NCBI GenBank assembly: GCA_044892525.1
Contig: CM097885.1
Coordinates: 247,256,001-247,319,852 of the forward strand
Direction: 5' to 3'
DNA: 63,852 nt
Source of the DNA: Schmidtea polychroa
Taxonomy: Eukaryota
Shown: positions 1 to 63,153 of the stretch, in pieces
How positions within the stretch are numbered: the first letter of the stretch is position 1
How the letters are laid out: each line of letters begins with the position of its first letter
Program-made: the position numbers and the translations under genes
The notes under the pieces: generated by a model
The model's input: the letters and a program-made list of their open reading frames with translations, nothing else
Databases searched by the model: none
Told to the model about the DNA's origin: nothing

Positions 1-107
1 AAATGGTCACTGGTGTGCTACTAGTTAAAGAGAATGGTGTCGATATTTTCGGTGTGAAACATCCAATTATTTCCAATGCGAAAGATATTGTTGGGGATGT
101 TTGATCT
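1..107 (-). CDS. Start of a fifth PTS-type exon, truncated by the window edge
   Basis: Positions 1-107 are identical to 2241-2347 ([35 protein letters not shown]), acceptor at 108. Confidence 0.85.
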
Positions 108-3100
108 CTGAATTTAAGAAATGAATAAACGATTTCATTATTATTTATTTTTTTTTAAGTTCATATCTAATATTTGTCAAGATGCTTTTTCATAATTGTC
201 ATTAACATTTAAAAGTTGGCGAATATTACTGTTAATACTTGACATTTCAATTTCTTTAAATTTTTATTTTTAAATTTTATTTAAAAAGTTTCTGAAAAAT
301 TAATTTCTTTTCATAAAACTTGAATGTAGGCACGCTTGAAAAATGAAAAAGTAATTTTTTCTTTTATATCAATTCTAATGATTCTTTACAATAGAATGAC
401 CTGGTAGATTATATAGAAACGATTGACCAAAGCGTACGTTTTACTTCGACACTTTCAAAAATGTGGTAGAAAATTTTGATATTAGAGGTTATTTCTTACT
501 TTGGTTTATTGGGATTTTGAGATATATTAAATTCAATTATTTTCGTTGTGACATTTTATAAATTAAATTTGATATGTTACAGAAGTATTAAAACTATATC
601 TAATACCCTTAAAATATGATGAATTGTAACTTACATATTTTGTATTGTGGTAATACGAAATTCTATGTTTTGGATTTCTGAACCTGGATTTACTATTGGA
701 GAAGACAATTTGTCCAAAAGTGTATTAGTAGAAACTAAGTCTCTTCCTGTCATGGTTACGGAAGATTGGACACCATCTCGTAAGATGACAATAAATTGGA
801 AAGTTTTGATTTTCTGAGGTTTATCAGTAACGAAATTAATTTCATCGACTGCCGCTGATTGTGTTTCTAATAACAATTAATTGGAAAATGAATTTCTGCA
901 TTGACAGGGAAAAATAAATTTACGTCTTTGAGTAGGATTAACATCGATTAAAATTTTTGAACCGGTTAGGGATACACCTGAGACAGTTCCGAGTTTTTGG
1001 GTAGAATCGGTTGGCAGTTGTTTGTAATCAACAATAACAGTAATGTCGGAAGGCGGTATAATCTATTTGTATAAATATTTACTAAAATATTACAATAATA
1101 ATCTTATTACATTTATGTCAGACATTCCGTTTTTCTTATTGCACAATTGTGTACTAGTGACCAGTGGTGTAGATATTGTTCCAGAGATTTGGGAGGTTGT
1201 TGATGTTAATGATTTGGTTGATGAAATAGTACCAGATGTTGAACCTGTGGTTAATACAGTAGTAATGGTGGATGGAGTAGTCGATATAGTGGATTCTGTC
1301 GAGGAAGTTGGGGTTGTTGCACTTGTGGCAGTTTCTAATGTTGATGATGTTGGTGATACAATGGAAGTAGTTCCTGATATTAATGACGTTGTGCTTTCTG
1401 TTGAAGATGTCGTTGATGAGAGTGAACTAGATGTTGATGCTGGTCCCATAGTGTAAGTCGATATAGTGGATTCTGTCGAGGAAGTTGGTGTTGTTCCACT
1501 TGTGGCAGTTTCTAATGTTGATGATATTGGTGATACGATCGAAGTAGTTCCAGATATTAATGATGTTGATCTTTCTGTGGAAGATGTCGTTGATGAGAGT
1601 GAACTAGATGTTGATGCTGGTCCCATAGTGTAAGTCGATATAGTGGATTCTGTCGAGGAAGTTGGTGTTGTTCCACTTGTGGCAGTTTCTAATGTTGATG
1701 ATGTTGGTGATACGATGGAAGTAGTTCCTGATATTAATGATGTTGTGCTTTTTGTTGAAGATGTCGTTGATGAGAGTGAACTAGGTGTTGATGCTGGTCC
1801 CATAGTGTAAGTCGATATAGTGGATTCTGTCGAGGAAGTTGGTGTTGTTCCACTTGTGGCAGTTTCTAATGTTGATGATGTTGGTGATACGATGGAAGTA
1901 GTTCCTGATATTAATGATGTTGTGCTTTCTGTGGAAGATTTCGTTGATGAGAGTGAACTAGATGTTGATGCTGGTCCCATAGTGTAAGTCGATATAGTGG
2001 ATTCTGTCGAGGAAGTTGGTGTTGTTCCACTTGTGGCAGTTTCTAATGTTGATGATGTTGGTGATACGATGGAAGTAGTTCCTGATATTAATGATGTTGT
2101 GCTTTCTGTGGAAGATTTCGTTGATGAGAGTGAACTAGATGTTGATGCTGGTCCCATAGTGTAAGTCGATATAGTGGATTCTGTCGAGGAAGTTGGTGTT
2201 GTTCCACTTGTGGCAGTTTCTAATGTTGATGATGTTGGTGAAATGGTCACTGGTGTGCTACTAGTTAAAGAGAATGGTGTCGATATTTTCGGTGTGAAAC
2301 ATCCAATTATTTCCAATGCGAAAGATATTGTTGGGGATGTTTGATCTCTGAATTTAAGAAATGAATAAACGATTTCATTATTATTTATTTTTTTTTAAAT
2401 TCATATCTAATATTTGTCAAGATGCTTTTTCATAATTGTCATTAACATTTAAAAGTTGGCGAATATTACTGTTAATACTTGACATTTCAATTTCTTTAAA
2501 TTTTTATTTTTAAATTTTATTTAAAAAGTTTCTGAAAAATTAATTTCTTTTCATAAAACTTGAATGTAGGCACGCTTGAAAAATGAAAAAGTAATTTTTT
2601 CTTTTATATCAATTCTAATGATTCTTTACAATAGAATGACCTGGTAGATTATATAGAAACGATTGACCAAAGCGTACGTTTTACTTCGACACTTTCAAAA
2701 ATGTGGTAGAAAATTTTGATATTAGAGGTTATTTCTTACTTTGGTTTATTGGGATTTTGAGATATATTAAATTCAATTATTTTCGTTGTGACATTTTATA
2801 AATTAAATTTGATATGTTACAGAAGTATTAAAACTATATCTAATACCCTTAAAATATGATGAATTGTAACTTACATATTTTGTATTGTGGTAATACGAAA
2901 TTCTATGTTTTGGATTTCTGAACCTGGATTTACTATTGGAGAAGACAATTTGTCCAAAAGTGTATTAGTAGAAACTAAGTCTCTTCCTGTCATGGTTACG
3001 GAAGATTGGACACCATCTCGTAAGATGACAATAAATTGGAAAGTTTTGATTTTCTGAGGTTTATCAGTAACGAAATTAATTTCATCGACTGCCGCTGATT

Positions 3101-6100
3101 GTGTTTCTAATAACAATTAATTGGAAAATGAATTTCTGCATTGACAGGGAAAAATAAATTTACGTCTTTGAGTAGGATTAACATCGATTAAAATTTTTGA
3201 ACCGGTTAGGGATACACCTGAGACAGTTCCGAGTTTTTGGGTAGAATCGGTTGGCAGTTGTTTGTAATCAACAATAACAGTAATGTCGGAAGGCGGTATA
3301 ATCTATTTGTATAAATATTTACTAAAATATTACAATAATAATCTTATTACATTTATGTCAGACATTCCGTTTTTCTTATTGCACAATTGTGTACTAGTGA
3401 CCAGTGGTGTAGATATTGTTCCAGAGATTTGGGAGGTTGTTGATGTTAATGATTTGGTTGATGAAATAGTACCAGATGTTGAACCTGTGGTTAATACAGT
3501 AGTAATGGTGGATGGAGTAGTCGATATAGTGGATTCTGTCGAGGAAGTTGGGGTTGTTGCACTTGTGGCAGTTTCTAATGTTGATGATGTTGGTGATACA
3601 ATGGAAGTAGTTCCTGATATTAATGACGTTGTGCTTTCTGTTGAAGATGTCGTTGATGAGAGTGAACTAGATGTTGATGCTGGTCCCATAGTGTAAGTCG
3701 ATATAGTGGATTCTGTCGAGGAAGTTGGTGTTGTTCCACTTGTGGCAGTTTCTAATGTTGATGATATTGGTGATACGATCGAAGTAGTTCCAGATATTAA
3801 TGATGTTGATCTTTCTGTGGAAGATGTCGTTGATGAGAGTGAACTAGATGTTGATGCTGGTCCCATAGTGTAAGTCGATATAGTGGATTCTGTCGAGGAA
3901 GTTGGTGTTGTTCCACTTGTGGCAGTTTCTAATGTTGATGATGTTGGTGATACGATGGAAGTAGTTCCTGATATTAATGATGTTGTGCTTTTTGTTGAAG
4001 ATGTCGTTGATGAGAGTGAACTAGGTGTTGATGCTGGTCCCATAGTGTAAGTCGATATAGTGGATTCTGTCGAGGAAGTTGGTGTTGTTCCACTTGTGGC
4101 AGTTTCTAATGTTGATGATGTTGGTGATACGATCGAAGTAGTTCCAGATATTAATGATGTTGTTCTTTCTGTGGAAGATGTCGTTGATGAGAGTGAACTA
4201 GGTGTTGATGCTGGTCCCATAGTGTAAGTCGATATAGTGGATTCTGTCGAGGAAGTTGGTGTTGTTCCACTTGTGGCAGTTTCTAATGTTGATGATATTG
4301 GTGATACGATGGAAGTAGTTCCAGATATTAATGATGTTGTGCTTTCTGTTGAAGATGTCGTTGATGAGAGTGAACTAGATGTTGATGCTGGTCCCATAGT
4401 GTAAGTCGATATAGTGGATTCTGTCGAGGAAGTTGGTGTTGTTCCACTTGTGGCAGTTTCTAATGTTGATGATGTTGGTGATACGATCGAAGTAGTTCCT
4501 GATATTAATGATGTTGTTCTTTCTGTGGAAAATGTCGTTGATGAGAGTGAACTAGATGTTGATGCTGGTCCCATAGTGTAAGTCGATATAGTGGATTCTG
4601 TCGAGGAAGTTGGTGTTGTTCCACTTGTGGCAGTTTCTAATGTTGATGATGTTGGTGATACGATGGAAGTAGTTCCTGATATTAATGATGTTGTTCTTTC
4701 TGTTGAAGATATCGTTGATGAGAGTGAACTAGGTGTTGATGCTGGTCCCATAGTGTAAGTCGATATAGTGGATTCTGTCGAGGAAGTTGGTGTTGTTCCA
4801 CTTGTGGCAGTTTCTAATGTTGATGATATTGGTGATACGATCGAAGTAGTTCCTGATATTAATGATGTTGTGCTTTCTGTTGAAGATGTCGTTGATGAGA
4901 GTGAACTAGATGTTGATGCTGGTCCCATAGTGTAAGTCGATATAGTGGATTCTGTCGAGGAAGTTGGGGTTGTTCCACTTGTGGCAGTTTCTAATGTTGA
5001 TGATGTTGGTGATACGATCGAAGTAGTTCCTGATATTAATGATGTTGTTCTTTCTGTGGAAGATGTCGTTGATGAGAGTGAACTAGATGTTGATGCTGGT
5101 CCCATAGTGTAAGTCGATATAGTGGATTCTGTCGAGGAAGTTGGTGTTGTTCCACTTGTGGCAGTTTCTAATGTTGATGATGTTGGTGATTCGATGGAAG
5201 TAGTTCCTGATATTAATGATGTTGTGCTTTCTGTTGAAGATGTTGTTGATGAGAATGAACTAGATGTTGATGCTGGTCCCATTGTGTAAGTCGATATAGT
5301 GGATTCTGTCGAGGAAGTTGGTGTTGTTCCACTTGTGGCAGTTTCTAATGTTGATGATATTGGTGATACGATCGAAGTAGTTCCTGATATTAATGATGTT
5401 GTTCTTTCTGTGGAAGATGTCGTTGATGAGAGTGAACTAGATGTTGATGCTGGTCCCATAGTGTAAGTCGATATAGTGGATTCTGTCGAGGAAGTTGGTG
5501 TTGTTCCACTTGTGGCAGTTTCTAATGTTGATGATATTGGTGATACAATGGAAGTAGTTCCTGATATTAATGATGTTGTTCTTTCTGTGGAAGATGTCGT
5601 TGATGAGAGTGAACTAGATGTTGATGCTGGTCCCATAGTGAAAGTCGATATAGTGGATTCTGTCGAGGAAGTTGGTGTTGTTCCACTTGTGGCAGTTTCT
5701 AATGTTGATGATATTGGTGATACGATCGAAGTAGTTCCTGATATTAATGATGTTGTTCTTTCTGTGGAAGATGTCGTTGATGAGAGTGAACTAGATGTTG
5801 ATGCTGGTCCCATAGTGTAAGTCGATATAGTGGATTCTGTCGAGGAAGTTGGTGTTGTTCCACTTGTGGCAGTTTCTAATGTTGATGATATTGGTGATAC
5901 GATCGAAGTAGTTCCAGATATTAATGATGTTGTGCTTTCTGTTGAAGATGTCGTTGATGAGAGTGAACTAGATGTTGATGCTGGTCCCATAGTGTAAGTC
6001 GATATAGTGGATTCTGTCGAGGAAGTTGGTGTTGTTCCACTTGTGGCAGTTTCTAATGTTGATGATATTGGTGATACGATCGAAGTAGTTCCAGATATTA

Positions 6101-9100
6101 ATGATGTTGTGCTTTCTGTTGAAGATGTCGTTGATGAGAGTGAACTAGATGTTGATGCTGGTCCCATAGTGTAAGTCGATATAGTGGATTCTGTCGAGGA
6201 AGTTGGTGTTGTTCCACTTGTGGCAGTTTCTAATGTTGATGATATTGGTGATACAATGGAAGTAGTTCCTGATATTAATGATGTTGTTCTTTCTGTGGAA
6301 GATGTCGTTGATGAGAGTGAACTAGATGTTGATGCTGGTCCCATAGTGTAAGTCGATATAGTGGATTCTGTCGAGGAAGTTGGTGTTGTTCCACTTGTGG
6401 CAGTTTCTAATGTTGATGATATTGGTGATACGATCGAAGTAGTTCCTGATATTAATGATGTTGTTCTTTCTGTGGAAGATGTCGTTGATGAGAGTGAACT
6501 AGATGTTGATGCTGGTCCCATAGTGTAAGTCGATATAGTGGATTCTGTCGAGGAAGTTGGTGTTGTTCCACTTGTGGCAGTTTCTAATGTTGATGATATT
6601 GGTGATACGATCGAAGTAGTTCCTGATATTAATGATGTTGTTCTTTCTGTGGCAGATGTCGTTGATGAGAGTGAACTAGATGTTGATGCTGGTCCCATAG
6701 TGTAAGTCGATATAGTGGATTCTGTCGAGGAAGTTGGTGTTGTTCCACTTGTTGCAGTTTCTAATGTTGATGATATTGGTGATACGATGGAAGTAGTTCC
6801 TGATATTAATGATATTGTGCTTTCTGTTGAAGATGTTGATGAGAGTGAACTTGATGTTGATGCTGGTCCCATAGTGTAAGTCGATATAGTGGATTCTGTC
6901 GAGGAAGTTGGTGTTGTTCCACTTGTGGCAGTTTCTAATGTTGATGATATTGGTGATACAATGGAAGTAGTTCCTGATATTAATGATGTTGTTCTTTCTG
7001 TGGAAGATGTCGTTGATGAGAGTGAACTAGATGTTGATGCTGGTCCCATAGTGTAAGTCGATATAGTGGATTCTGTCGAGGAAGTTGGTGTTGTTCCACT
7101 TGTGGCAGTTTCTAATGTTGATGATGTTGGTGATACGATGGAAGTAGTTCCTGATATTAATGATGTTGTGCTTTCATTGGAAGATTTCGTTGATGAGAGT
7201 GAACTAGATGTTGATGCTGGTCCCATAGTGTAAGTCGATATAGTGGATTCTGTCGAGGAAGTTGGTGTTGTTCCTCTTGTGGCAGTTTCTAATGTTGATG
7301 ATGTTGGTGAAATGGTCACTGGTGTGCTACTAGTTAACGAGAATGGTGTCGATATTTTCGGTGTGAAACATCCAATTATTTCCAATGCGAAAGATATTGT
7401 TGGGGAGGTTTGATCTCTGAATTTAAGAAATGATTAAACGATTTCATTATTATTTATTTTTTTTGAAGTTCATATCTAATATTTGTCAAGATGCTTTTTC
7501 ATAATTGTCATTAACATTTAAAAGTTGGCGAATATTACTGTTAATACTTGACATTTCAATTTCTTTAAATTTTTATTTTTAAATTTTATTTAAAAAGTTT
7601 CTGAAAAATTAATTTCTTTTCATAAAACTTGAATGTAGGCACGCTTGAAAAATGAAAAAGTAATTTTTTCTTTTATATCAATTCTAATGATTCTTTACAA
7701 TAGAATGACCTGGTAGATTATATAGAAACGATTGACCAAAGCGTACGTTTTACTTCGACACTTTCAAAAATGTGGTAGAAAATTTTGATATTAGAGGTTA
7801 TTTCTTACTTTGGTTGTTTGGGATTTTGAGATATATTAAATTCAATTATTTTCGTTGTGACATTTTATAAATTAAATTTGATATGTTACAGAAGTATTAA
7901 AACTATATCTAATACCCTTAAAATATGATGAATTGTAACTTACATATTTTGTATTGTGGTAATACGAAATTCTATGTTTTGGATTTCTGAACCTGGATTT
8001 ACTATTGGAGAAGACAATTTGTCCAAAAGTGTATTAGTAGAAACTAAGTCTCTTCCTGTCATGGTTACGGAAGATTGGACACCATCTCGTAAGATGACAA
8101 TAAATTGGAAAGTTTTGATTTTCTGAGGTTTATCAGTAACGAAATTAATTTCATCGACTGCCGCTGATTGTGTTTCTAATAACAATTAATTGGAAAATGA
8201 ATTTCTGCATTGACAGGGAAAAATAAATTTACGTCTTTGAGTAGGATTAACATCGATTAAAATTTTTGAACCGGTTAGGGATACACCTGAGACAGTTCCG
8301 AGTTTTTGGGTAGAATCGGTTGGCAGTTGTTTGTAATCAACAATAACAGTAATGTCGGAAGGCGGTATAATCTATTTGTATAAATATTTACTAAAATATT
8401 ACAATAATAATCTTATTACATTTATGTCAGACATTCCGTTTTTCTTATTGCACAATTGTGTACTAGTGACCAGTGGTGTAGATATTGTTCCAGAGATTTG
8501 GGAGGTTGTTGATGTTAATGATTTGGTTGATGAAATAGTACCAGATGTTGAACCTGTGGTTAATACAGTAGTAATGGTGGATGGAGTAGTCGATATAGTG
8601 GATTCTGTCGAGGAAGTTGGGGTTGTTCCACTTGTGGCAGTTTCTAATGTTGATGATGTTGGTGATACAATGGAAGTAGTTCCTGATATTAATGACGTTG
8701 TGCTTTCTGTTGAAGATGTCGTTGATGAGAGTGAACTAGATGTTGATGCTGGTCCCATAGTGTAAGTCGATATAGTGGATTCTGTCGAGGAAGTTGGTGT
8801 TGTTCCACTTGTGGCAGTTTCTAATGTTGATGATATTGGTGATACGATCGAAGTAGTTCCAGATATTAATGATGTTGATCTTTCTGTTGAAGATGTCGTT
8901 GATGAGAGTGAACTAGATGTTGATGCTGGTCCCATAGTGTAAGTCGATATAGTGGATTCTGTCGAGGAAGTTGGTGTTGTTCCACTTGTGGCAGTTTCTA
9001 ATGTTGATGATGTTGGTGATACAATGGAAGTAGTTCCTGATATTAATGATGTTGTTCTTTCTGTGGAAGAGGTTGTTGATGAGAATGAACTAGATGTTGA

Positions 9101-51100: not shown

Positions 51101-54100
51101 GAAGATATTATAAATGATGTTGAAACTTCAGATGTTTTAAAATAATTTGAAAAATTAGAGTAAAATGTTAGAATATTTAGTTCAGTTTCTTTGAAAGAAT
51201 TTTATGCATTCAGAAAAAAACTTTTGAATGATTTTAGAATAGCTCGTGAAATCAAAATTATCGATTTTTTGATTAAAAAAAAATCTTTTTATCATGAAAC
51301 TTATTTTACATCTAAAGTTCTTATTCAATGTTTCGTCAAAAATGATGTCCCAAACCGGTGTCCAAATGTATTACTATATTCAATTGTAGTTATTTTTTCA
51401 GTTAGCAGACTTTGCCTTTTTAACATTCTTTAATTTAATCCATATTTATAAATTTTTATGTTCATTGTTAATGATAATTTAATAATTATTTTTTTCGCGT
51501 TATTGTTTATTGTAAAAATATATTTCTAATTTGTTATCTTTGCTTTCTTTGATGGGTAACGGTACCATTCAACTTTTAAAGATTTTACTAATTTTTTATG
51601 AATGCTTTCGTTTTCTTAAAATTTATAAAAACTTACCACAATCTTTTTCGTCGGAATTATCTTCGCAGTTCTGAGTTCTATCGCACTTTTTTGTCATTGG
51701 TATGCAAACTCCATTGGAAATGCATTGAAATTGTTGAAGATCACACTCATCTTAATTATATTTATTTTTAATAATTAAATGATTTTTAAACTTTATTTTA
51801 AAATTTTTTTATAATTTTGATAATACCAGTAGAACATGTGAGAAAATCTGATCTGTATAATAGTTATTGTTCCTTCAGAAAGTTTTTTGAAAAGACTTTA
51901 TTTATGAATTGCAGTAATAACATGATAAATTAATAATAGTAGAAATCGAGATTATTTTTACAAATGGAATGCAGTTGTTGACGCCGTTAGAAAGGGAATG
52001 GAAGTAACTATAGTATACGGATGCAAAAAATAATGCCTCTACATGTTCATCTGAATAGTTCACTCTCTAGGATTACTGTTTCCAAGGGTAATTTTGAAAT
52101 TAATTTTTGAGTCCCTTAAACTATAGCTCAACCAGAGAATGTTTAAGATTGGTTCTGATGGTGCTCGAAAATTATACTAATTCAAAGTATTCACTCGAAT
52201 GATTGAAATACATGCGTTGTAACTGTCAATGAAATAGATTATGGTTAATTCCCGTTAAACTGATGGCCTTTTTATATTTAAATTTTAGCTTTAGATAATT
52301 AGTTATTTTTAATTTTCAATCAACACCTGATTAATAAAATTATTTAAGGTGATTACTGTTGTAAGTAATATATTTTGATGTTTTGATTGAATTTTTAGCA
52401 ATTATTATATCTGTCAGTCGGTTATTTATTTATATGTAAATAATAATAAGTTATTTATCTAATAATAATAAATTATAAAACTTCATCAAATATTGGTATT
52501 ATATCTATTGATTAAATCGTTAATAAACCATGCAAAATCTATATTTATAATTTTATGAGTCATATGACAGACATCGATTCGCTTATCTTTCACTTGTGGA
52601 CAGGCCCGGTTTTAGGCATAGGCGACGTCGGCAGCAGCCTAGGGCGCCGATTTACAAGCGGGCGCCAAATAGTTCTGCTTTTTTTATCAAGTAAATTAAA
52701 TATTTTATAAACTTTCTATCTTTATATTGATATATACATATGTATGAATTTGTATATATATATATATATATATTATATCTACAATGTCACAAGAACGGCT
52801 TGTGGGATTAGCAATATTGTCGATTGAACACGAAATGGCGCGTGATATAGATACGAAGTTGCTGCTTGAAGATTTCGCTAAACTAAAAGCACGAAAAATT
52901 AAATTTTAAATGGTTTTTGTTTTTATATATATTTTTGTGTAATAAATAAATGAAGTATAGTTATTTTATTTTCATTTACTTCTTTAATTATTGGGTTTGT
53001 TTCTAGACTAGAGGCGCCATTTTTTTAGTTTGCCTAGGGCGCCAAATACTCTAGCGTCGGGCCTGCTTGTGGAGATGTTATTATTTCTGATCAACTTTAT
53101 ACTTTTTATTGATTGAAATATTAACTATGTGTGATAAATGATTTCCAGTATTAGGCGTAATTTTTATTACTAAAAAGTTAATAATCTTACTAATACCTGT
53201 GATTGTCTAACAATTTGGATAGCAAATATTACTTTTTTTGGATTTTTTTCTAATACAAATTATTTAGTCTTACTAATATTTTGATGTTATTTCCATTTAT
53301 ATTTCTATCTTGATTTATGAAAGTATTATGTGATTCGTAGTTTTCAATATATAGTTTTCCACTAAATAAATTTTAAATAAAAATTTCTCAGTAAAACTGA
53401 TTAATTATTAGCCATTATTTACCAAAGAATAATTTAGTTTTATCAAAAGAGCATGGTCAGTCACAAATGATTTAGAACCACTGATTTAAGATTGCATTAC
53501 CTAACCAATTAATGATAATAGATAACCAATAATCCTTTCAACTCTTGAATTTATTTTGCATGACATACCTGTAACTCCAGCATACTTATTACAATTTCAA
53601 TTAAAAATGGTAGATTTAAGACAAGATAAATAAAAACGAAACAGGTGTCATGCAAATGTGCATTCAAAACACTATATATATATATTTAATTTAAGTAATT
53701 TATTTAAACAAAAATAACAACAGTCGATGACTATTCATAAGTTTTATAGCTTATAAATAGCGCCGACATAGTCACCAACGGAGTGCAAAAGGTTAATTAT
53801 ATCTTGAATAACAAATGCAACCTTTAGATTCATGATGTTTTTTAACATAATGAATCAAAGATACTTCTGTTATTTTGTCTGTCCACATATTATCATTATA
53901 TAAAAACAAAATTTACTGCAGTTTTTCTCATCTTCTGAATTTGAACAATCAGTAATTTTATCGCATATCTTGCTAGATTCAATGCATTTTCCATCGTCAC
54001 AACGAAATTGACTTGGTGTACATGTTGTTATGCATTCACTGTCATCTTCAGTGCAATTGAATTGAGCTTGTACACATTGACTGTAAATTTTATTCAGTTG

Positions 54101-57100
54101 AAATATTTGAATTTTATTGAAATGATAAAAATATACCATTTTTTACAATTTTCCATTTTAATAATAGCTCCATTCACATAACTTTGACCGTTATAGTAAC
54201 AGGGACAGGTAGTTGGTGGAATACATTCGCCGTTAAGATCTATCATCCCATTGGGACATGTACAACCTTCAACACAATGGCTTGTACTACAGTGTGAAGG
54301 TGCATTAGAACCAATCGTATCACACGTTTGCGGGCACGGAGATGCGCAAGCATTGTAATGCTTTCCACCTTCGCACATTATAGCTGATTTAGAAATAAGT
54401 ATCACATATTAGCCTACATAATATAAAATATATTTACGGCACAAGTTTTGAGTTCTCCATTTAACAGGAATTCCGAGAAACGCACATTGGGTTGCAAATG
54501 TTGCTAGAGAGGTGCAAAGACATTCGCAATCACCTCCACGATTGCATCCGCATGCATCATACAAACAATTACTGTAGTACCTGTTAACGTCTTGATGCAT
54601 TGCCTCAATGCAGGAACTAAAAACACCGTTTGTATCTTTCATTATACCACACATTTGTTCCGCCCAGCTTTTTCTATCAGGATTCTATTAAAAAATATAA
54701 TTGTGTAATTGATTTAAGAGTAAATTAAAAATAATTACGGCATTGCACATATCTTGCTCTTTTGATGAAGCTACGTTGTTTTCAGGAGAAATTTCATAAG
54801 GACAAATATCTGCATTGGCGATAAAAGATTCTGCGAATTGTATTGCATCTTCATATTTCATTGTTCCATGCATATATTCATTTTGAGAATCTCCGTCATA
54901 ATTTCCACAAAGACCTTGTACATTACCTTGAAATGAAGGTTTCAAAAACAGATAAACTCGCGTGCCTTAAATGAAGATAAAATAATCTAATTGACTGACA
55001 ATTATTACTTCTGTCCCATAGTACTCGTAAACCGATCGTATCACTAACAAGTTGGGTGAAGAATGTTAGTTGTTCTATAACTACGTCGTATTTTGGGAAC
55101 AACGGAAGGGTATCATTATTTCCTCTTGATAATAGATAGGTTTGACCTCCAATTACGATTTGTACAAATTTAGCACATGTTGCCTGATAAAAATATATAT
55201 TACAATCAAAATCAAGTTATTCAAATCAAATAATAATACAATTCATGCGTTTTCAGAACGAAATCTGAATAATAAAATGTACGTGGTATTTGTAATGACA
55301 TAAAAAGTTATAATAACACGGAATATATTAACGACTTTACCAGTGACAAATTAGTCATTTGAAGCCCTGGCAGTTTTCATGCGCCCCTGATGACTGAGGA
55401 TAATTTTTAATATAATGAATTTGAAATTAAATTCCCCCAACCCATTAGTGTGTTATTAAGTACGCTTATTTATTAAATATTTTCAATTTTTTGGCGATAA
55501 TGGGCGGTATTTCATTTATTTTCATTTTGACACAGGATCAAAAATGTGTGTTGAATAGGATTAAGTCTTTGTTCTTTTGTCAAAATAAATATAATGAAAT
55601 ATCAAAAAGAAAACAAATCAAAGGTGACAAAGATATGAAAAAAATTACTGATAATATAGTCAGTTATGTCAAAATTTATGTCAAAATATATATATTGGTA
55701 TTCAGAAATATAAAGAAAAAGATAAAATTGAAATGGAATAATTTTGGAAAAGACAAAGGATTCTGCTGAGAATGATTAATATTTGAATGATTGAAAATGG
55801 TAAAATTGGGAATTTAATTTAATTCAGCATTGTCAAAAAATTACTTTCAAAATCAAGTAATTTGATTTAACCCCTTTTAGAACAAAGGCTGAAATTGGTT
55901 AATATATTAACCAGTTGCTTTAAGGTCTATATTTCTAATACCGCCCATATAAACATCAACTTTAATACATCAATACTTTGTCGACAACTCTCTTTGATTA
56001 ATTTATTGTTCTAACTACTTGAAGTTTGCGTTACAATGAAGAAGTCCAGCCATGTGAAAGATCTAAAAAGAACTGTATATGTATGTAAACAGAAACCATG
56101 TCATCTGCGCGGACGTCAATTGCGCGGGTCCAACTGCGCGGATGTCAATTGCGCGGGTCNNNNNNNNNNNNNNNNNNNNNNNNNNNNNNNNNNNNNNNNN
56201 NNNNNNNNNNNNNNNNNNNNNNNNNNNNNNNNNNNNNNNNNNNNNNNNNNNNNNNNNNNNNNNNNNNNNNNNNNNNNNNNNNNNNNNNNNNNNNNNNNNN
56301 NNNNNNNNNNNNNNNNNNNNNNNNNNNNNNNNNNNNNNNNNNNNNNNNNNNNNNNNACTCCGAGTCTATCCGACAAAATATTTTGTCCCCCTATGGGTAA
56401 TGCTCACAAGGGTACTGCTCACGCTCAACAACTCACAAGGGTATTATTAAACAATTGACTACCCGCGCAATTGGCGTCCGCGCAATTGGCGTCCGCGCAA
56501 TTGACGTGCTACGATGTAAACAGTGTAATTTGCCGTTGTGCACTTTATGTTTTGAACTTTTTCACAAGAATGGTTGTAAAAAAATATAATCAATACTTGT
56601 TTGAAATGTTTATATTTTTTGTAATAAAATTTTGTACAAAATCTCTTTTTTATTACATAAATTTATTTTCTAACATGGTGCTAAACAATCTTTGGTCAAT
56701 ATATTAACCGATGAAATCTTTGATTTTTCTGATGGACTATGAAATATTTTTATTTTTATTTTTCAAATTTATTTTATCTGGATAATGAATATTTTAAAAT
56801 ATATAAGTTAAAATTCAAATTCCAAAATAATTAATTTGTCCTACAAAGAGTTAACATTTATAATACGATAATTAAACAATTGTTATCCATTTTATAATGA
56901 ATTCAATGACATTGGTTGAAAATTGCTTAAAATTCCGTTTTTCAACCTTTTCCGATTGGTCGAACGGGATTCTTAATTTATCACCGCGCATTATCTGTTT
57001 TAGATTTTTATTTTTACTGATATTGACACTTGTAAATTGGTTTCATGGGAAAAATTAAACTACCGAAATATTTTTCTAATAAATTATTGCAGAAAATTAT

Positions 57101-60100
57101 TTATAATTTTTATTTTGTTTATCCAATTAAACTTTCCGTATGTCAGTTGAAAAAAACTGATTTAATCGGTCAAAGAAAATTAATTAAAGAACATTTACAA
57201 AATTTATTACATTTAACCCTGTAATAACATCCTCAAAATTCAGTCTGAAACTCAATTATAACTTTTGTGTGAAGTGCCTCATGATACTGTTTCTCTTAAT
57301 GGGTAAAGGTTTCTCGCGGGATTTCATTTAACACCCTATGACATTGGTTATTGTGTTATATTACAAATTTAAGAAAAATGGATTTGTGATTTTTACTCGT
57401 GAAGCATTTTACAGATTGAAATTGATAGTAACGCGCATTAAAACAATAAAAATGTACAAATATTTCATTCAAAAATATCCTCACACTTCGGAACCCTATG
57501 CGTAACATTAGGGGTTGACATGCAACGCGCGTAAAAAATTATTGCGCTTTAGTTTTAAAAATCTCAAATCTCCAATTTAGTTAGAAATGTAAATATTTAA
57601 TACCTGACTAAATCCACAAGCGATATTGGCAACCGAGATTGTAATTGATGGAATATTGTTTGATAAATCCCCGGGACTATCTATCAATGTGTACATGCAA
57701 CTTCCTTGAAATGAAAACATTTGACCATCTAAAGTCTTGTAATGTGGATCACCATAAGCTATGCAAACAGCTGGAAGAAAATATTAACCAAACATTGAGC
57801 TGAAATTATCAATTTACCTTCGCAATTGGCTGTTTCCTTTGACAAAAGAGTCCACATTCTGTTTGAACAAATATATTTTGCACATTTAATAGTAATGACA
57901 TCATTCGGTGCATATTCTCGACTCATATAGATGCATGGGCAGTCAGATGGTTGAACGCAAGTTCCCTTTTATAAATTTATAATATCATAACACTTAAATT
58001 CAATTCTAATACATCTTTTTTTGAAACGGTACCATTGGGACAGCCACATGAATTTGCGATTGAAGAAGTATCAGTGCATGTATCGTAATTGGTGCAACTA
58101 TTGCACTGATCTACAGAATCCATATAGACTTGATTTTTTGGGCAAACTGGATTAGTACAATTGTCCTTGGTTTTGCAATTCAATCGTCCATTAACACAAA
58201 CACTGAAATAATAATATTCTATTGGGTTTTCAAAAAATGTTTTATGTACCAAGTTTGACAGTTGATAGTGATATTCGTTCCTGCAGGGATTTCTGGATCT
58301 TTTGGCCTTGAAGGATTCCAACATGTACATTCAGACTCTGAAACACATTGCCCTGTTCCTGTTTTATAATAATTTGGAGCGCATTCACATCCAGGAAAAC
58401 AATCATCTTCGCATTTACTAGCAGTAGCTTCATTTAGTTCTCGACATGTACTTTTGCAAGTGCGAGAACATATCTGAAAAACTGTTCCTCCAGCTTCGCA
58501 CAGTGGAACTACAAATATATTTAAACCAAATTTTCTTAGTTTAATGACTTATTTACTGCATGATTTTAAATGATTCGATGTAAAGGGCACTTCATATTGG
58601 ATGCCAAATCGTCTACAGGCAATAGCTGCATTCAGAATCGCTGAACAGTATGAAAGGGGTTGGCCTTTATCGGATGTTTGTTCTCGGCGACAATAAGTTG
58701 AGTAAAATTCTTTGTCGACTTTACTGCTGTTCATGCAAGCACTGAATTCGGGACCATTTAAAATCGTCGAACAAATGTCATTCTAATATTATAAGATAAT
58801 TAAAGTGAACTATCACTCATCAATTACATCTCCCGAGGGTGGATCAACAATATTTTGAGGGGTATTTGCACAGCTGCCCGTCATATATGATTTTGCAATA
58901 TTGACAATTGACTCGCGGATCGAATTTTCTTTTTCCGTGAAATCATTTTCTGAGTTTCCATCAAACTTTCCACATAATCCGATTAACTAAATCATTTTAT
59001 TAACCATATTTTAATAAAGAAATATCAACATTATTTTTTAGGGTGTCGCTGGCTTTGATATAAATAGACTTGCTGCCATCGAAATATAATTTAAAATGGC
59101 TGCTGAGTTTAACTTCGATATAAATATTTGTCAACTTTCTTATGTGAATATTTTTATCTGGTATGGTAAATGGAAGCTTTGTGGTGAAATCCTCTCCGTC
59201 AATAAATACATTAGTCTGAGAATCCCCCAATTTCGGCGAGGTAGCTTTTAAAATAATTTCTGATCCATTCATTTTTACACTCACGATTTTTGGTTCATTT
59301 ATAAATGCTGAACTTCCTTCCGAACCATGCATATTTTCTGTATTGCTTTGGATGATAACAAACACATTAGCTCTATCATCGGTATTATTTGCAGAGGGCT
59401 CTACAGCGACATATTGACATCCTACATCATTGAAAGCAAATTTTGCTCCATCAAAAGTATCAAACTGGGTTCCCATTATGCCACAAGTTGATGGGCATAT
59501 TTTTTCAGTGCAGTGCCAAAGCGAAGAATTGCATGTACTTAAAATTAAATATCGTTAGAAGTAAATCAGTTTTAAACGATTACCATGTGTTACAGTCAAA
59601 TTGTCTGACAGTTCCTGGAGGATGTTCCTGGCCATCATAAAGACATGGACAGCTTTCTGGTTTAATACAAGTGTTTCCATATTCAACTTCTCCTGGACCA
59701 CATATACATCGTCCGACTTTCGAATTCTGGCAGTATACACTTGGGGATTGGAAAAGATTTCTACATGTGACTGGGCATTCTGAAGCACAGTCTGACCATA
59801 CTTTATTGCCAAGACATTGCGTTTCTAGAAATATTCAATTACAATGTGCATTGTATTTTTCTAATGAAAATATACCACAAAGGGTATCGCTTCTCCATTG
59901 GATACATGAGCCTTTTGCTGAGCAAGAATCTGAATATGCTGATAAATGAGTGCATAATATATCAGAAACATTCGGAATTTCTAGGGTGGTGTTTGAGTTC
60001 TGGGATTTTCTGCAGATGTTCTCGACACACATAGAAAAGTAGGTATCAGAATTAACCTAAACAATTAATTTATATCAATGTATTATATGAAAAGTAATTA

Positions 60101-63100
60101 CTAAATCTGCACATCCGGGAAATTTCAGTCTTATTTTGCTGCACTGTTGATTTGCTAATATTTGATCGTCAGACTTGCATGTTGAAATAGTGTTTGCAAT
60201 ATCGGGACACTAAATATATTATATTATTAATAAATTAAATAATTATTTTATGGACAGATTTACAAATTATTAATGTGATTTATCTCATATTAATTGGCTT
60301 GTAATATTTTTAAATTTAATATTTAAAAATAAATATGAATAATTTAAAATAAATGGTTGTGAAGAAATTAAAATAAAATATATTTAATTTTTTAAATGAT
60401 TAACAAATTTAACATTAATCTCTAAGAAAATTTATATTTTGGTATATTNNNNNNNNNNNNNNNNNNNNNNNNNNNNNNNNNNNNNNNNNNNNNNNNNNNN
60501 NNNNNNNNNNNNNNNNNNNNNNNNNNNNNNNNNNNNNNNNNNNNNNNNNNNNNNNNNNNNNNNNNNNNNNNNNNNNNNNAAATTTGCATTTAAAATTATT
60601 ATTTTTGCAAAAAGTTGCATTTATAATTTTACTAGAATAATTTTTTTATAAAAATTTTTAAATTAATTTTAATTATTTAAATATGATTATAAAAATAAAA
60701 AAAATATGTTTCATAATGTTTATTCACTTTCCGGTAACAATGTTCCAATTTTATCGCTTGAATTGTAATAGAATATAAAATATTTAAAAACGTTATCTTT
60801 AGCAAAGTTCCTATCATTGGCAAGTAATTTTTTTAACATAGAAAAACTCCTCTCTCCAGATATTGAAGTGGGCGGGCAATCAATTAAATCAATATACCTC
60901 GATTGCGAAATGTTTTTGTTTTTCGCTTCCATTAACTCACTCATTCCATTTTTATCTAGGTGTAAATTAATAAATTTTTTCAAATCTACGGGCTCATCTT
61001 TAAAATCAATATTTCTTAATGATTTATATCCAGTCTCAATTGTATGTATGTCCATTTCAAATTCATCCAAAACTTTTATTAGCTGGTTATAATTCTTTTT
61101 AATCTCAACTAACTCACTAAACAAACCATCTGATTGAACAGCAATTTTCGTATTTGTCACAACGACTAACTATTCAAACAAATGGAAGTGAATTTGCATT
61201 TATTCGCATTTATTTTTTAAAAATTTGCATTTATTGCGTTTATTTGCAATTATTTGCATTGGAGAGCCCTAATAAATGATATTATTATAAGAATTTTTTT
61301 TAATTTTCACATCTGATTTCTTTTCAATTGACATTTTGTTTATTAAAGAATTGATTATGGATCAGTAAAGATATCGATGTTTTTTTGACATTCACAAGTT
61401 TTCGGCGCATATATAAATCTGTATATGTATATTGGATCTGTTTGGATCAATATTTATTAGACACAATTTAATTATATTAATTGGTTATAAATTGTGATAT
61501 AAAATCTTTCCACAATAACGTTATCTTACTCCTGATCCTTTGAACGAATTACCAAATGAAGCTACATTGTCGAAGTTTTTGAAGTCATTACCGGGAACAT
61601 TGTCTGCATTACCACATAAGCCAGTTACGTCCCCACTGAATATTGAATTGTGTATTGAAACAAAAATATTGCTATGATTATCCCATTTTAATTTTATATT
61701 TCCTGCTTCTAACGATAGTAAAATGAAGTCATCCTGTCTTATTACATACAGAGGAGTTCCTTAATTTTTATGAAAGTCAATTAAAAATATTTCTTTTTGA
61801 AAAATAAAACCTGGTATAATTAAAGCACTGTCAGTGTTGGTGACGGATAAAGCTGTCAATGGATTATCTGAATCAGTCGTATAAAGAAGTCCATCATCGG
61901 TACTTTTAACAATAACTTCGCCGGCTTCAATAACAATTCTCTATATTATAAAATATTAAAAGAAAAAAAAAATCATTTTATTACTTTAACACAGCCTTTT
62001 GCAGAGTTACAGTTTTCATATGCAATATTAATTGACCAAGTTACAGCAGACGCATCGGATGGTGCTGTTAAAATGTAATTACATCTTCCTTCAAATGTGT
62101 ATAGTTGATTGTCGAATGTCCGGTAATAGTCCAATCCATAACTGTGACAAGTGGTAAAATTCTCGCTATTCATATCATTACCCCCTGAATAATAAATTTT
62201 CAATATCACTTGGTATGACACAATTTTCTTTTTACTTGCAAAGTTCGCATTACAGGATACACATGAGCCTGACTGACTACCCCATGATCCTGATTTGTCT
62301 GCACAGCACTCATCATATGAAACCGCTTTTCCTAGGAAGTCTGATTTTTTGGCTGAAAAACATTGATCACTTTGGTAACAATAGAGTTTTGAGGGATGTT
62401 GGTTTTGAATGACTGTGGAATTAGTACAATTATAATTTCTTTTAATAAAACTTATTTACTGGTGGGACTGTCTTCATCACATTGTGTACCAGCATATTTT
62501 TCTTGGCATTTGCATTGATTTGGTGACATACAGACCCCTCCGTTATAGCAACCTCCCTTATCAGCATAACAAACCGCTAATAAATTAATTTTATATTTTA
62601 ATGTTTTTTTTTCAAAATTTTATTTACATATATTGCAGTATGGGAAATTTTCATATCCAACGCAACAATGTTCTTCTGTGACGACTTTTTGTCTAAATAT
62701 AACAGTATCAATGATAAAACCTTTCCAAAACTCTTACAAAGTAAAATTGCATTTCGGTCCAGTTATACCGCTGCTAACGTATAACTGCATGGATAATGCT
62801 TGCTGCCTCGAAGCAGGAATTGAAGAATCGTTGTATTGCTGAGCAATTGGTACAGATTTTTCGTTCAAGTTGTAGTTTTCCATCATCAGGCCAATGTATT
62901 CGTTGCATGGCCTCGTGATGGTATCAATGTCCAGGTTATAATCAAATAGACAATTATTTGGAGAGGAAATTGATCTGTAAATTTATTCATTTTTTTAATG
63001 TCGGATCAAATAAATAATTCCTTACTTTGGTTTAACTCCAATTAAAGTTTTGCCCGATTCAACAGATTGAGTTGTAAGTAGAGCATAAAGCAATATTGAG

Positions 63101-63153
63101 AGTAAGAGTTGATTGAAATTCGTTTGCCAAACAGTATGAGTACAAGTTCCCAT
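1..63153 (-). CDS. Giant secreted SCO-spondin-like / gel-forming mucin-like protein, multi-exon, 3'-partial (about 148 exons, about 14,800 aa in window)
   Basis: Manual splicing at GT..AG junctions gives one continuous reading frame with consistent phases from ATG 63153 to the window edge. Summed exon length 44,326 nt. Contains signal peptide, 3x VWD-C8-TIL, LDLa cluster, 40 discoidin-like modules and Ser/Thr repeat exons. No transcript evidence available. Confidence 0.85.
635..1062 (-). CDS. Subtype-C discoidin-like module exons, copy 4
   Basis: Exons 924-1062 and 635-866, near-identical to the other copies. Confidence 0.85.
1111..2347 (-). CDS. PTS exon 4 (1,237 nt), 5 copies of the 59-aa repeat
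   Basis: Acceptor at 2348, donor at 1110. Matches ORF 1090..2316. Confidence 0.9.
2875..3302 (-). CDS. Subtype-C discoidin-like module exons, copy 3
   Basis: Exons 3164-3302 and 2875-3106, near-identical to copies 1-2. Confidence 0.85.
3351..7416 (-). CDS. PTS exon 3 (4,066 nt), 21 copies of the 59-aa repeat
   Basis: Acceptor at 7417, donor at 3350. Matches ORF 3330..7385. Confidence 0.92.
7944..8371 (-). CDS. Subtype-C discoidin-like module exons, copy 2
   Basis: Exons 8233-8371 and 7944-8175, near-identical to copy 1. Confidence 0.85.
8420..12485 (-). CDS. PTS exon 2 (4,066 nt), 21 copies of the 59-aa repeat
   Basis: TTCAG acceptor at 12486, GTAATAAG donor at 8419. Matches ORF 8399..12454. 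Confidence 0.92.
13012..13439 (-). CDS. Subtype-C discoidin-like module exons, copy 1
   Basis: Exons 13301-13439 (139 nt) and 13012-13243 (232 nt), introns 48, 57, 526 nt. [11 protein letters not shown]|[12 protein letters not shown] ... [12 protein letters not shown] ... [14 protein letters not shown] ... |[16 protein letters not shown]. Confidence 0.85.
13488..21078 (-). CDS. Giant PTS exon 1 (7,591 nt), 41 copies of a 59-aa Ser/Thr repeat
   Basis: Acceptor at 21079-21080, donor at 13487. Phase 2 in, phase 0 out. Repeat [59 protein letters not shown] (38/59 Ser+Thr), 177-bp period, three one-codon deletions. Confidence 0.92.
21000..22210 (-). CDS. LDLa-like module 6, Thr/Pro linker and single subtype-B discoidin-like module
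   Basis: Exons 21915-22210, 21683-21870, 21490-21628 (139 nt), 21202-21433 (232 nt), then the giant exon starting at 21078. [39 protein letters not shown]; [11 protein letters not shown]|IIQPSDITV ... [10 protein letters not shown]. Confidence 0.85.
22116..49506 (-). repeat. Tandem array of 35 near-identical three-exon coding cassettes (periods 773, 797, 770 bp)
   Basis: Unit = exon 139 nt, intron 56, exon 232, intron 105, exon 187 (211 or 184 in variants), intron 54. Example: exons 49216-49354, 48928-49159, 48636-48822. The 34 spacings are 18x773, 14x797, 2x770, summing to 26,612 bp (marker positions 22393 to 49005). Encodes 186/194/185 aa per unit. Confidence 0.93.
49409..50099 (-). CDS. 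Exons 25-27: LDLa modules 3-4, divergent LDLa 5, Thr-rich linker and start of first discoidin-like module
   Basis: Exons 49980-50099, 49827-49937, 49409-49779. [14 protein letters not shown]...[13 protein letters not shown]; [15 protein letters not shown]...[16 protein letters not shown]; [26 protein letters not shown]; ends [14 protein letters not shown]. Confidence 0.88.
50690..50990 (+). pseudogene. Degraded pogo/Tigger (DDE_1-type) transposase remnant in intron 24
   Basis: With one frameshift at about 50785 it reads [28 protein letters not shown] ... [10 protein letters not shown], resembling the pogo-type FLPxNTTSxxQPxDxGIIxxFKxxY motif. Stops downstream, no termini identified. Confidence 0.55.
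51637..51750 (-). CDS. Exon 24: LDLa module 2 (absent from the ORF track)
   Basis: 114-nt phase 1-1 exon with TTAAG acceptor and GTAAG donor. [37 protein letters not shown]. Confidence 0.9.
52601..53065 (+). mobile_element. Non-autonomous hAT element (Tip100-like MITE), 465 bp, internally deleted
   Basis: Termini CAGGCCCG...CGGGCCTG. Perfect 8-bp TSD CTTGTGGA at 52593-52600 and 53066-53073. Subterminal CCTAGGGCGCC motifs, (TA)10 at 52753-52772, and remnant [43 protein letters not shown] (ATG 52784, stop ends 52909) resembling the hAT transposase C-terminus. Confidence 0.9.
53917..54684 (-). CDS. Exons 21-23: C8-3, TIL3, VWC-like and LDLa module 1
   Basis: Exons 54438-54684, 54137-54383, 53917-54080. 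[18 protein letters not shown] ... [29 protein letters not shown]; [35 protein letters not shown]. Confidence 0.92.
54739..57770 (-). CDS. Exons 18-20: VWD domain 3, split by a 2,420-nt intron
   Basis: Exons 57604-57770, 55009-55183, 54739-54965. [29 protein letters not shown] ... ACGFSQ|ATCAKFV ... [13 protein letters not shown] ... [15 protein letters not shown]. Confidence 0.92.
56105..56507. repeat. Inverted pair of short GC-rich 14-15-bp tandem arrays flanking an assembly gap (foldback/MITE-like)
   Basis: Left arm has ACGTCAATTGCGCGG-type units (56105-56159). Right arm has CCGCGCAATTGGCGT x2 plus CCGCGCAATTGACGT (56463-56507), the last being the exact reverse complement of a left unit. 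Confidence 0.6.
56160..56356. other. Assembly gap (197 N) in intron 18
   Basis: Run of N. Confidence 1.
57818..58782 (-). CDS. Exons 14-17: C8, TIL, TIL'-like and VWC-like modules
   Basis: Exons 58557-58782, 58250-58508, 58013-58202, 57818-57965 (introns 47-48 nt). [19 protein letters not shown] ... DDCFPGCEC; [17 protein letters not shown] ... [13 protein letters not shown]. Confidence 0.88.
58828..59537 (-). CDS. Exons 12-13: VWD domain 2
   Basis: Exons 59030-59537, 58828-58986 (43-nt intron). [27 protein letters not shown] ... [16 protein letters not shown]. Confidence 0.9.
59584..60209 (-). CDS. Exons 9-11: C8, TIL and VWC-like modules of assembly 1
   Basis: Exons 60102-60209, 59876-60056, 59584-59824. 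[10 protein letters not shown] ... [22 protein letters not shown]; [18 protein letters not shown] ... [23 protein letters not shown]. Confidence 0.9.
60449..60579. other. Assembly gap (131 N) in intron 8
   Basis: Run of N. Confidence 1.
60720..61160 (-). pseudogene. hAT-like transposase C-terminal fragment in intron 8
   Basis: 146-codon open frame containing [19 protein letters not shown], resembling the hAT dimerization-region motif (TSxxxERxFS). No N-terminal or catalytic region visible. Flanked by repeated TTTGCATTTA motifs and GGAGAGCCCTAA at 61261-61272. Confidence 0.6.
61530..62184 (-). CDS. Exons 6-8: VWD domain 1
   Basis: Exons 61985-62184, 61811-61940, 61530-61759. [28 protein letters not shown] ... 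[11 protein letters not shown] ... [16 protein letters not shown]. Confidence 0.9.
62236..62974 (-). CDS. Exons 2-5: EMI-like (CCxGY), EGF-like and TB-like cysteine modules
   Basis: Exons 62738-62974, 62628-62692, 62460-62576, 62236-62412 (introns 45, 51, 47 nt). Peptides [14 protein letters not shown]; [24 protein letters not shown]; [22 protein letters not shown]. Confidence 0.75.
63026..63153 (-). CDS. Exon 1: start codon and signal peptide
   Basis: [43 protein letters not shown]. Hydrophobic core and V-x-S cleavage-like site, in-frame TGA about 30 nt upstream, GTAAGG donor at 63025. Confidence 0.75.

Follow-up and report, generated by a model that had tools for sequence, protein, structure and literature searches.

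SCO-spondin is a vertebrate protein whose domain set includes one FA5/8C (discoidin) domain, with 1 FA5/8C, 13 LDLrA, and 27 TSR domains in chick; the review that gives these figures lists the domains and not their order, and a proline-, threonine-, and serine-rich (PTS) region goes unmentioned in it (PMC8487547). It is SCO-spondin to which the mucin-like proteins of invertebrates come closest, and an F5_F8 domain is characteristic of the lophotrochozoan ones (Lang et al. 2016, PMC4948705). In planarians, one study describes five large mucin-related loci of S. mediterranea with VWD-C8-TIL repeats, a repetitive region of ~500-2,000 aa, and vWC, TSP, and CT ends; its tables record that PANTHER places S. 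mediterranea dd_3183 in the SCO-spondin subfamily and, in the part searched, make no mention of discoidin (Cote et al. 2019, PMC6453901). Flatworms also possess adhesion protein 2 (ap2), represented by Mlig-ap2, Mile-ap2, and Tmed-ap2, which are giant secreted proteins with a VWD/TIL/LDLa head, two types of central repeats (Thr-rich, O-glycosylated), and a tail of TSP1 and TIL domains, and whose adhesion function was shown by RNA interference and footprint proteomics (PMC6410801, PMC6745481, PMC9229212). Mlig-ap2 comprises 14,794 aa: its N-terminus has VWD, TIL, and LDLa domains, its centre 46 repeats of two types, and its C-terminus multiple TSP1 domains (PMC6410801). The locus described here lies in a 63,852-nucleotide stretch of DNA from the planarian Schmidtea polychroa (assembly GCA_044892525.1, contig CM097885.1, positions 247,256,001 to 247,319,852), called the window throughout. 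The window very likely holds most of one real, very large minus-strand gene, whose product has 42 discoidin-like modules and long stretches of Ser/Thr repeat between a head and a tail that are both SCO-spondin-like.

Positions are window coordinates unless they carry the prefix C1 (the contig that holds the window), C3, or L, and the gene is read on the minus strand. The genome as scanned amounts to 781 Mb, with four chromosome-sized contigs of 272, 190, 145, and 93 Mb. The window has a G+C content of 33% and a T-rich plus strand, and its protein-like long open frames are all on the minus strand. A first-pass annotation made from the letters of the window had read it as a single frame of more than 14,700 aa, still open at the window's edge, in which three VWD-C8-TIL units and an LDLa cluster lead into 40 discoidin-like modules and mucin-like Ser/Thr tandem repeats, one of them 59 aa long; it had also pointed to the adjacent DNA for a stop codon and for TSP1 or cystine-knot domains. 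The frame was modelled explicitly with a frame-consistent GT..AG dynamic programme (DP) using codon-usage scoring, run on the head, the array, and, for the tail, the flanking DNA at C1:247236001-247256000, with the acceptor at 54965 placed by hand from the sequence. Within the window the model has 148 exons, 44,308 coding nt, and 14,769 codons free of stops, in agreement with that annotation. The whole gene comprises 166 exons, 165 GT-AG introns (median 56 nt, minimum 42 nt), and 52,482 coding nt for 17,493 aa, and it closes with a single terminal stop at C1:247241431, 14.6 kb past the window start. It spans ~77.7 kb of the minus strand (C1:247241431-247319153) from an ATG at 63153, the first after an in-frame stop and one with a hydrophobic core downstream. 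The predicted product has an unglycosylated mass of ~1.8 MDa, 39.5% Ser and Thr, 361 Cys, and a net acidic composition (K+R 1,003 vs D+E 1,550).

The head (aa 1-1732) contains three VWD, three C8, and three TIL domains, all recovered by Pfam on the exact exon translations and followed, as the first-pass annotation had it, by an LDLa cluster. Four LDLa units lie above the Pfam cut-off (Ldl_recept_a E 1.2e-10, 3.6e-10, 4.6e-7, and 2.2e-11) and a fifth falls below it at 22.6 bits. The closest PDB sequence matches of the VWD2 region are the D3 assemblies of MUC5AC, VWF, and MUC2. Exon 49779-49409 runs from LDLa-5 through the opening Thr-rich linker into module 1, of which it encodes the first 12 residues, and head and array are therefore physically linked.

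The repetitive part has 40 modules in the window (35 in cassettes, one divergent, and four in larger mega-units) and 42 in the gene. Each cassette has exons of 139, 232, and 187 or 211 nt in phases 0, 1, and 2, which reading one cassette by eye also gave, with introns of 54-105 nt; the coding length is 558 or 582 nt with phase 0 at both ends, enough for a 151-aa module and a 34-43-aa Thr/Pro linker that is ~51% Thr. The units are 99.8% identical, introns included, and fall into 16 distinct sequences, and the first 12 run twice through the length order 773-773-797-797-773-770. Since identity extends to the introns and a six-unit length pattern occurs twice at the array start, amplification or homogenisation of the cassettes was very recent. 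The last exon of the array ends in a Cys-rich, LDLa-like stretch for which the exon scan gave no Pfam match. Beyond it the last seven modules are spaced 134 to 2,503 aa apart, first by one short Thr-rich, Cys-rich linker and then by six blocks of a 59-aa (177-nt) repeat, 385-2,503 aa long, which Tandem Repeats Finder (TRF) also detected. These repeats sum to 6,902 aa at 63% Ser and Thr, a composition that bears out their description as mucin-like. Each giant exon carries one module's end, the repeats, and the next module's start; the modules, too, are each divided among exons shared with the adjoining linker, which leaves no part able to exist by itself.

In the flanking DNA, where the stop was found, the tail exons yield Pfam matches to TSP1 (five strong and two weak) and to TIL (three). 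The order is TSP1 directly after the last Ser/Thr stretch, two further TSP1, TIL, further TSP1, TIL, TSP1, TIL, a VWC-like exon, and finally cystine-knot motifs (C-x-G-x-C, C-x-C-C, and C-x-C). With TSP1, TIL, and cystine-knot motifs in the tail, the SCO-spondin-like frame appears to hold at both ends, the TSP1 units being far fewer than the 27 TSR domains of the chick protein. A C-terminal VWD was absent from the tail exons, and a VWD scan of the genome gave four matches in the gene, all in the head. The features within the window are collected in Table 1.

Table 1. Features of the gene within the window, from the start codon to the window's first position, with the basis for each assignment
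Feature	Position	Strand	Basis
Exon 1	63026..63153	-	Start codon and signal-peptide-like N-terminus with hydrophobic core
Cys-rich N-terminal exons: EMI-like motif (CCxGY...C), then EGF-like domain	62460..62974	-	EGF-type Pfam matches at 62461-62574, E 6.6e-6 to 1e-2; EMI at motif level only
Cys-rich stretch and VWD1, four exons	61530..62412	-	Pfam VWD positions 1-55 on 61985-62182 and 100-152 on 61530-61757
Intron with gap 60449-60579 and transposon-derived open reading frame 60723-61169	60210..61529	-	Flanking exons phase 0, domain-complete
C8-1 (60209-59876) and TIL-1 (59824-59584)	59584..60209	-	Pfam C8 positions 17-67, E 2.7e-10; TIL E 1.7e-7
VWD2, C8-2, TIL-2, and two more Cys-rich exons	57818..59537	-	Pfam VWD E 5e-13; C8 E 1.4e-5; TIL E 1.5e-8
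VWD3 first exon, GDPH at 57742-57753	57604..57770	-	Pfam VWD positions 1-49, E 5e-10
Intron with gap 56160-56356, short tandem repeats on both flanks	55184..57603	-	Splice model joins 57604 to 55183, phase 0
Remainder of VWD3, C8-3, TIL-3	54137..55183	-	Pfam VWD positions 122-152, E 1.1e-7; C8 E 6e-17; TIL E 4e-11
LDLa cluster	49409..54080	-	Exons 54080-53917, 51750-51637, 50099-49980, 49937-49827, 49779-49409
35 cassettes of 773, 797, or 770 nt	21915..49354	-	Motif counts 35/35/35; exon-2 profile matches; DP model
Linker exon and divergent module 36	21202..21870	-	64% identity to cassette over the 76-aa exon-2 part
Giant exon of 7,591 nt: module 36 end, 41.5 copies of the 177-nt (59-aa) Ser/Thr repeat, module 37 start	13488..21078	-	TRF; open frame of 2,552 codons; S 32.5%, T 30.3%
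Modules 37-40, exon pairs 13439-13012, 8371-7944, 3302-2875, 1062-635	1..13439	-	Profile matches; DP model
Ser/Thr-repeat exons between modules 37-40	12485-8420, 7416-3351, 2347-1111	-	TRF; composition
Exon 107-1	Continues past window start	-	Two further modules, TSP1/TIL tail, and stop in flank

Sequencing runs were scored by their share of sampled 31-mers of the gene, with library types guessed (X1 and X2 as RNA-like, and runs containing every word as DNA). For 53800-55300, X1 contains 0.57 of the sampled words and X2 0.44, where the share of exon-internal 31-mers is 0.62 and DNA-like runs reach 1.00, and for 13001-23000 the two contain 0.30 and 0.23. This pattern, as indirect evidence, fits an expressed, spliced message over head and array. 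Three runs labelled as from another organism (X3, X15, and X16) hold 0.16-0.23 of the sampled 31-mers, in head and array alike, so a close relative or another strain carries a near-identical gene.

Several points count against the single-gene model as drawn. Four optional in-frame exons that the programme had first proposed were discarded as a matter of judgement: 61169-60792 as a fragment of a transposon with at least 99 copies, 56508-56437 as simple repeat adjoining a gap, and 52877-52783 and 52674-52656 as devoid of a domain, the frame staying intact in their absence. Introns 53916-51751 and 51636-50100 were placed by phase and domain logic alone, and the long introns separating LDLa-1, LDLa-2, and LDLa-3 are the weakest links of the model. 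Pfam returned no EMI match in the gene, either in the genome scan at E<=10 or in the exon scan, and no Cys_knot match on the last exon.

Two assembly gaps interrupt the head, and both are concluded to be intronic under the splice model. Gap 56160-56356 lies in a predicted intron of 2,420 nt inside VWD3: the preceding exon covers Pfam VWD positions 1-49, a 58-aa middle exon follows, and exon 54739-54963 covers positions 122-152. The junction, '...ACGFSQ' to 'ATCAKF...' with phase 0 on both sides, falls at the point where VWD1 runs on within one exon. Gap 60449-60579 lies in a predicted intron of 1,320 nt, with the last VWD1 exon (Pfam match as far as position 152 of 156) on one side and the first C8 exon on the other, both in phase 0; C8 positions 17-67 are on the exon following the first C8 exon. 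A small in-frame exon inside either gap is possible. The edges of the first gap (56030-56160 and 56357-56520) consist of short tandem repeats, some frames of which read 'QLRGRQLRG' and 'AQLTSAQL', and a minisatellite probably lies behind it. The second gap adjoins a 149-aa open reading frame at 60723-61169 (-), within the VWD1-C8 intron, that has no Pfam match and is dispersed over all four chromosomes in at least 99 copies, of which many are broken by stops and some lie inside open frames of 470 aa. Being so dispersed and so often broken, it is a transposon fragment, and one stretch of it resembles a hAT-type dimerisation region.

The modules themselves were the least certain part of the first-pass annotation. 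An F5/8C domain has a consensus of ~150 aa closed by a Cys at each end, with a C-terminal motif of the R-x-E-x-x-G-C type, and the modules share this feature. All 42 are exactly 151 aa long, have only two Cys (the first and last residues), and end in VRLEVIGC (36 modules) or LEIIGC (six). Trp is absent from all 42, and the conserved Trp-containing core signature of discoidin is missing with it. The modules were compared with a discoidin domain from a Caspr/neurexin-IV-like gene of the same genome (L007), put together from three exon pieces with approximate splice points; it measures 153 aa from Cys to Cys, matches Pfam F5_F8_type_C at E 3.9e-11 and 2.9e-4, and is followed by Laminin_G. A profile of the three module types aligned with it by hhalign from 1-151 against 1-153, over 136 columns at 29% identity (P 4.7e-4 global, 2e-3 local). 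Shuffled comparators never scored as high: the global score was 21.2 vs 2.5 +/- 2.1 (maximum 8.6, 0/160, z 8.8) and the local score 25.0 vs 11.5 +/- 2.0 (0/120, z 6.8). With plain semi-global alignment, two of the three module types reached z 4.7 and 5.9. The aligned motifs include 'C..(P)LGM....IQDSQI' against 'C...DGM....IQPSDI' at the start and 'YYVEFSDGD' against 'LKVKLENGD' in the middle, with 'ISVRFELFGC' at the end on one side. Judged by their sequences, the modules probably descend from a discoidin domain. The earlier description of them as discoidin-like is thus supported by a full-length match to a Pfam-verified discoidin domain and stops short of proof, Pfam itself finding none among them.

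One competing view is that the 151-aa module has an unrelated or new fold that resembles discoidin only at its ends, which we consider unlikely without dismissing it. At E<=10 Pfam PF00754 matches the genome 67 times, always outside the window, and exon-wise scans at the same threshold were also empty, the gene having been scanned exon by exon at reduced sensitivity. The exon-2 profile found no homolog among 1.84 billion representative proteins, where two matches were at chance level, nothing elsewhere in the genome even at E<=10, and nothing meaningful among ESM Atlas and PDB sequences. These searches tell against discoidin descent, as do the lack of Trp, which leaves the signature region unmatched, the HH-suite's own probability of only ~14% for the match to the comparator, and the failure of modules in a paralog at C1:23.3 Mb to match the same comparator. 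Alignments by hhalign of the modules with the genome's fucolectin-like PF00754 matches were not significant. An AlphaFold2 model of the 76-aa exon-2 fragment (pLDDT 71.8; strand-strand-helix-strand) contains an 8-residue helix, a further point for an unrelated fold, but a run on a fragment is unreliable; it had no Foldseek match in PDB at E<=0.001 and is uninformative on the fold. Against all this, the alignment with the comparator is collinear from end to end at near-equal length, with none of the shuffles as high, and both ends share their motifs, C...GM....I..S.I first and VR.E..GC last. That the modules follow an LDLa cluster also fits the SCO-spondin layout. Descent from discoidin is accordingly the preferred reading of the modules.

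One further motif in the modules deserves description. GSVVV, the residues of the autoproteolytic site in the MUC1 SEA domain, occurs in 34 of the 35 cassette modules (e.g. 49241-49255 (-)), with GSKIL and GQIIQ at that place in the mega-type and divergent modules, and may be there by chance. A SEA-domain reading, prompted by GSVVV and the fragment model, was rejected: with about nine strand-like segments, a single helix, and Cys at its ends, the module does not resemble SEA.

The gene might also be the triclad counterpart of ap2, that is, a surface-binding glue of adhesive glands and not a component of general mucus, an identification that can be entertained only tentatively. The head, two repeat types, and tail match the published architecture of Mlig-ap2, Tmed-ap2, and Mile-ap2. 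According to the same publications, the repeat units of ap2 lack sequence conservation from one taxon to another, and several similar VWD loci exist in this genome, any of which could be ap2. The ap2 head is described with two VWD domains, whereas three are present here, and Tmed-ap2 is rich in Lys (22.5%), whereas this protein is acidic.

It is quite improbable that the size is partly an artefact of assembly, with the cassette and 59-aa arrays over-expanded or mis-joined and the true protein much shorter. Units that are nearly identical down to their introns are hard to assemble, the locus has two gaps, and the cassette copy number comes from one assembly. The DNA-like runs that contain every head word hold only 0.61-0.65 of the sampled words of 13001-23000, which likewise speaks against the full length. 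However, the internal structure of the array, with its 16 unit sequences, three lengths, and an order of six units occurring twice, is of a kind rarely made by errors, the frame is unbroken across 52 kb of coding sequence, and the gaps sit in the unique head, outside the arrays.

That two or more transcription units are present (a VWD/LDLa head gene and a separate module/PTS gene), or that parts of the array are untranscribed relics, is very improbable: introns of 2.2 kb and 1.5 kb do separate LDLa-1, LDLa-2, and LDLa-3, and the small runs X10 and X11 contain array words and next to no head words, but beyond the head there is no further start codon leading into a signal peptide, the phases of the LDLa exons are uniformly 1-1, the exon shared by LDLa-5 and module 1 and the module exons shared with neighbouring linkers tie the parts together, X1 and X2 contain words of both head and array, and the X10/X11 pattern is as expected of low coverage, under which repeated words are easier to recover.

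As a single gene, then, the locus would encode on one transcript a secreted glycoprotein that is a candidate for planarian mucus, adhesive, or fibre. From what is known of the families involved, the cystine knot would join chains tail to tail as dimers, and the N-terminal D assemblies would add head-to-head dimer links, as in VWF, gel-forming mucins, and SCO-spondin. O-glycosylation of ~6,900 Ser/Thr residues would give extended, hydrated segments, and the 42 disulfide-closed beta modules would sit on the chain as folded beads that, like discoidin domains, may bind sugars or other ligands. The end product may be a gel or thread in planarian mucus or adhesive secretions. By origin it would be an SCO-spondin-like or hemolectin-like invertebrate mucin whose discoidin unit and PTS spacer were amplified very recently. 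VWF uses a CGLC (CxxC) motif for multimerisation, and this motif is absent from all three VWD domains of the gene, which have TGLC, IGLC, and QGLC instead, a point against assembly as outlined. GDPH, an Asp-Pro motif that is an autocatalytic cleavage site in VWD domains of some mucins and FCGBP, occurs in this gene only in VWD3, VWD1 and VWD2 being without it. The lack of CGLC and the GDPH in VWD3 could alter the mechanism proposed. A bolder proposal, that the gene is a true protostome relative of SCO-spondin redeployed outside the nervous system and that the 42 Trp-less, lectin-like beads into which its single discoidin unit multiplied bind the protein's own or adjacent O-glycans, has a small chance of being right. 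If it were, one gene product would build a self-cross-linking thread or glue, a 'Reissner-fibre-like' polymer for gliding, adhesion, or prey capture.

The VWD scan of the genome gave about ten VWD loci. The counterpart of dd_3183 is at C1:23.31 Mb (90% identity to a 51-aa peptide from the tables of PMC6453901), whereas no exact-peptide match to a S. mediterranea ortholog of the present gene was found in the part of those tables searched, the two species being different. This paralog (C1:23305001-23375000 (+), L039-L045) follows the beaded plan of the present gene and encodes ~7,800 aa by a rough model, with an EMI-like motif and EGF domain, three VWD domains, 131-aa Cys..GC modules with Trp that alternate with PTS blocks, and a cystine knot (Pfam Cys_knot E 0.009). 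Its modules are related among themselves (z 9-21) and show no significant similarity to the modules described here or to the canonical discoidin domain. By eye its first and last modules are more discoidin-like, below significance against the canonical domain, and its module array resumes after Cys-rich exons, at ~47-57 kb of the joined loci. CGLC is present in two of its three VWD domains. An open frame on C3 ending in VWD was considered as a possible source of intron-free modules and rejected as irrelevant. It extends for 5,277 codons (C3:74057210-74073040 (+), L046-L048), is rich in Lys, Ile, and Leu, is apparently free of introns, and looks like a large lipid-transfer protein of the apolipophorin or vitellogenin type. 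It is apparently duplicated, with a second copy ~24 kb downstream (VWD matches at 74071430 and 74095183).

Downstream of the stop codon, L003:3360-4005 (+) and L004:6274-7410 (+) hold integrase-like and transposase-like frames along with long (TAT)n/(TA)n microsatellites, and L003:3-1472 (-) is an unrelated open frame of 490 codons. On the plus strand of the window, the 59-aa repeat between 1028 and 20400 (e.g. 17905-18432), and likewise every cassette, is overlain by open frames of 116-176 codons. Rich in Val, Asp, and Glu, these are Ser/Thr codons read in antisense, by-products that a prokaryote-style caller of open reading frames would report. The first-pass annotation had warned that such antisense frames were liable to miscalling.

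The locus thus offers a complete candidate gene for a structural polymer of planarian mucus or glue. Its 99.8% identical, phase-0 cassettes are a clean example of very recent amplification, and its beads between PTS blocks would illustrate how discoidin descent is missed by standard domain searches. Planarian 'large mucin-related' genes can be several times the size of earlier models, with ~17,500 aa here against the 500-2,000-aa repetitive regions reported in 2019. A gene of 166 exons with introns down to 42 nt and antisense open frames over its Ser/Thr repeats is also a warning for annotation.

Compared with vertebrate SCO-spondin (SSPO), the monomer of Reissner's fibre, the planarian protein is alike in its Cys-rich N-terminus, three VWD assemblies with TIL, LDLa cluster, and probable discoidin unit, and it resembles SCO-spondin in alternating TSP1 and TIL domains and in C-terminal cystine-knot motifs. 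It differs in having 42 discoidin-like modules, 5 LDLa, ~7-8 TSP1, and ~6,900 aa of Ser/Thr repeats, and in that EMI and CTCK are recognised by motif, with Pfam silent on both. SCO-spondin is not known to have a PTS region.

The gel-forming mucins MUC2, MUC5AC, and MUC5B share with it the D1-D2-D3 assemblies, very large PTS exons (here up to 7,591 nt), Cys-bounded beads within PTS regions (CysD in the mucins), and a C-terminal cystine knot, recognised here by its motifs. Unlike them, the planarian protein is without CysD, CGLC, VWD4, or the C-terminal VWD4-VWC-CTCK block as a whole, and it has LDLa, TSP1, and discoidin-like modules. The flatworm ap2 proteins are alike in head, pair of repeat types, and tail.

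Relative to the planarian 'large mucin-related' loci, the repetitive part is ~14,700 aa vs ~500-2,000 aa. The lophotrochozoan F5/8C mucin-like proteins differ from the planarian one in that here the discoidin unit is present 42-fold, alternates with PTS blocks, and is too divergent for Pfam, and in that an LDLa cluster and a TSP1/TIL tail are present. The novelty implied when the gene was first read as a hybrid was overstated, since SCO-spondin-like F5/8C mucins and planarian loci running from VWD through TSP to CT had already been described (PMC4948705, PMC6453901). The gene belongs to a described class of invertebrate mucin-like proteins and does not found a new kind; its novelty lies in the complete model, in the size, and in the evidence for its 42 beads as Trp-less derivatives of a discoidin domain.

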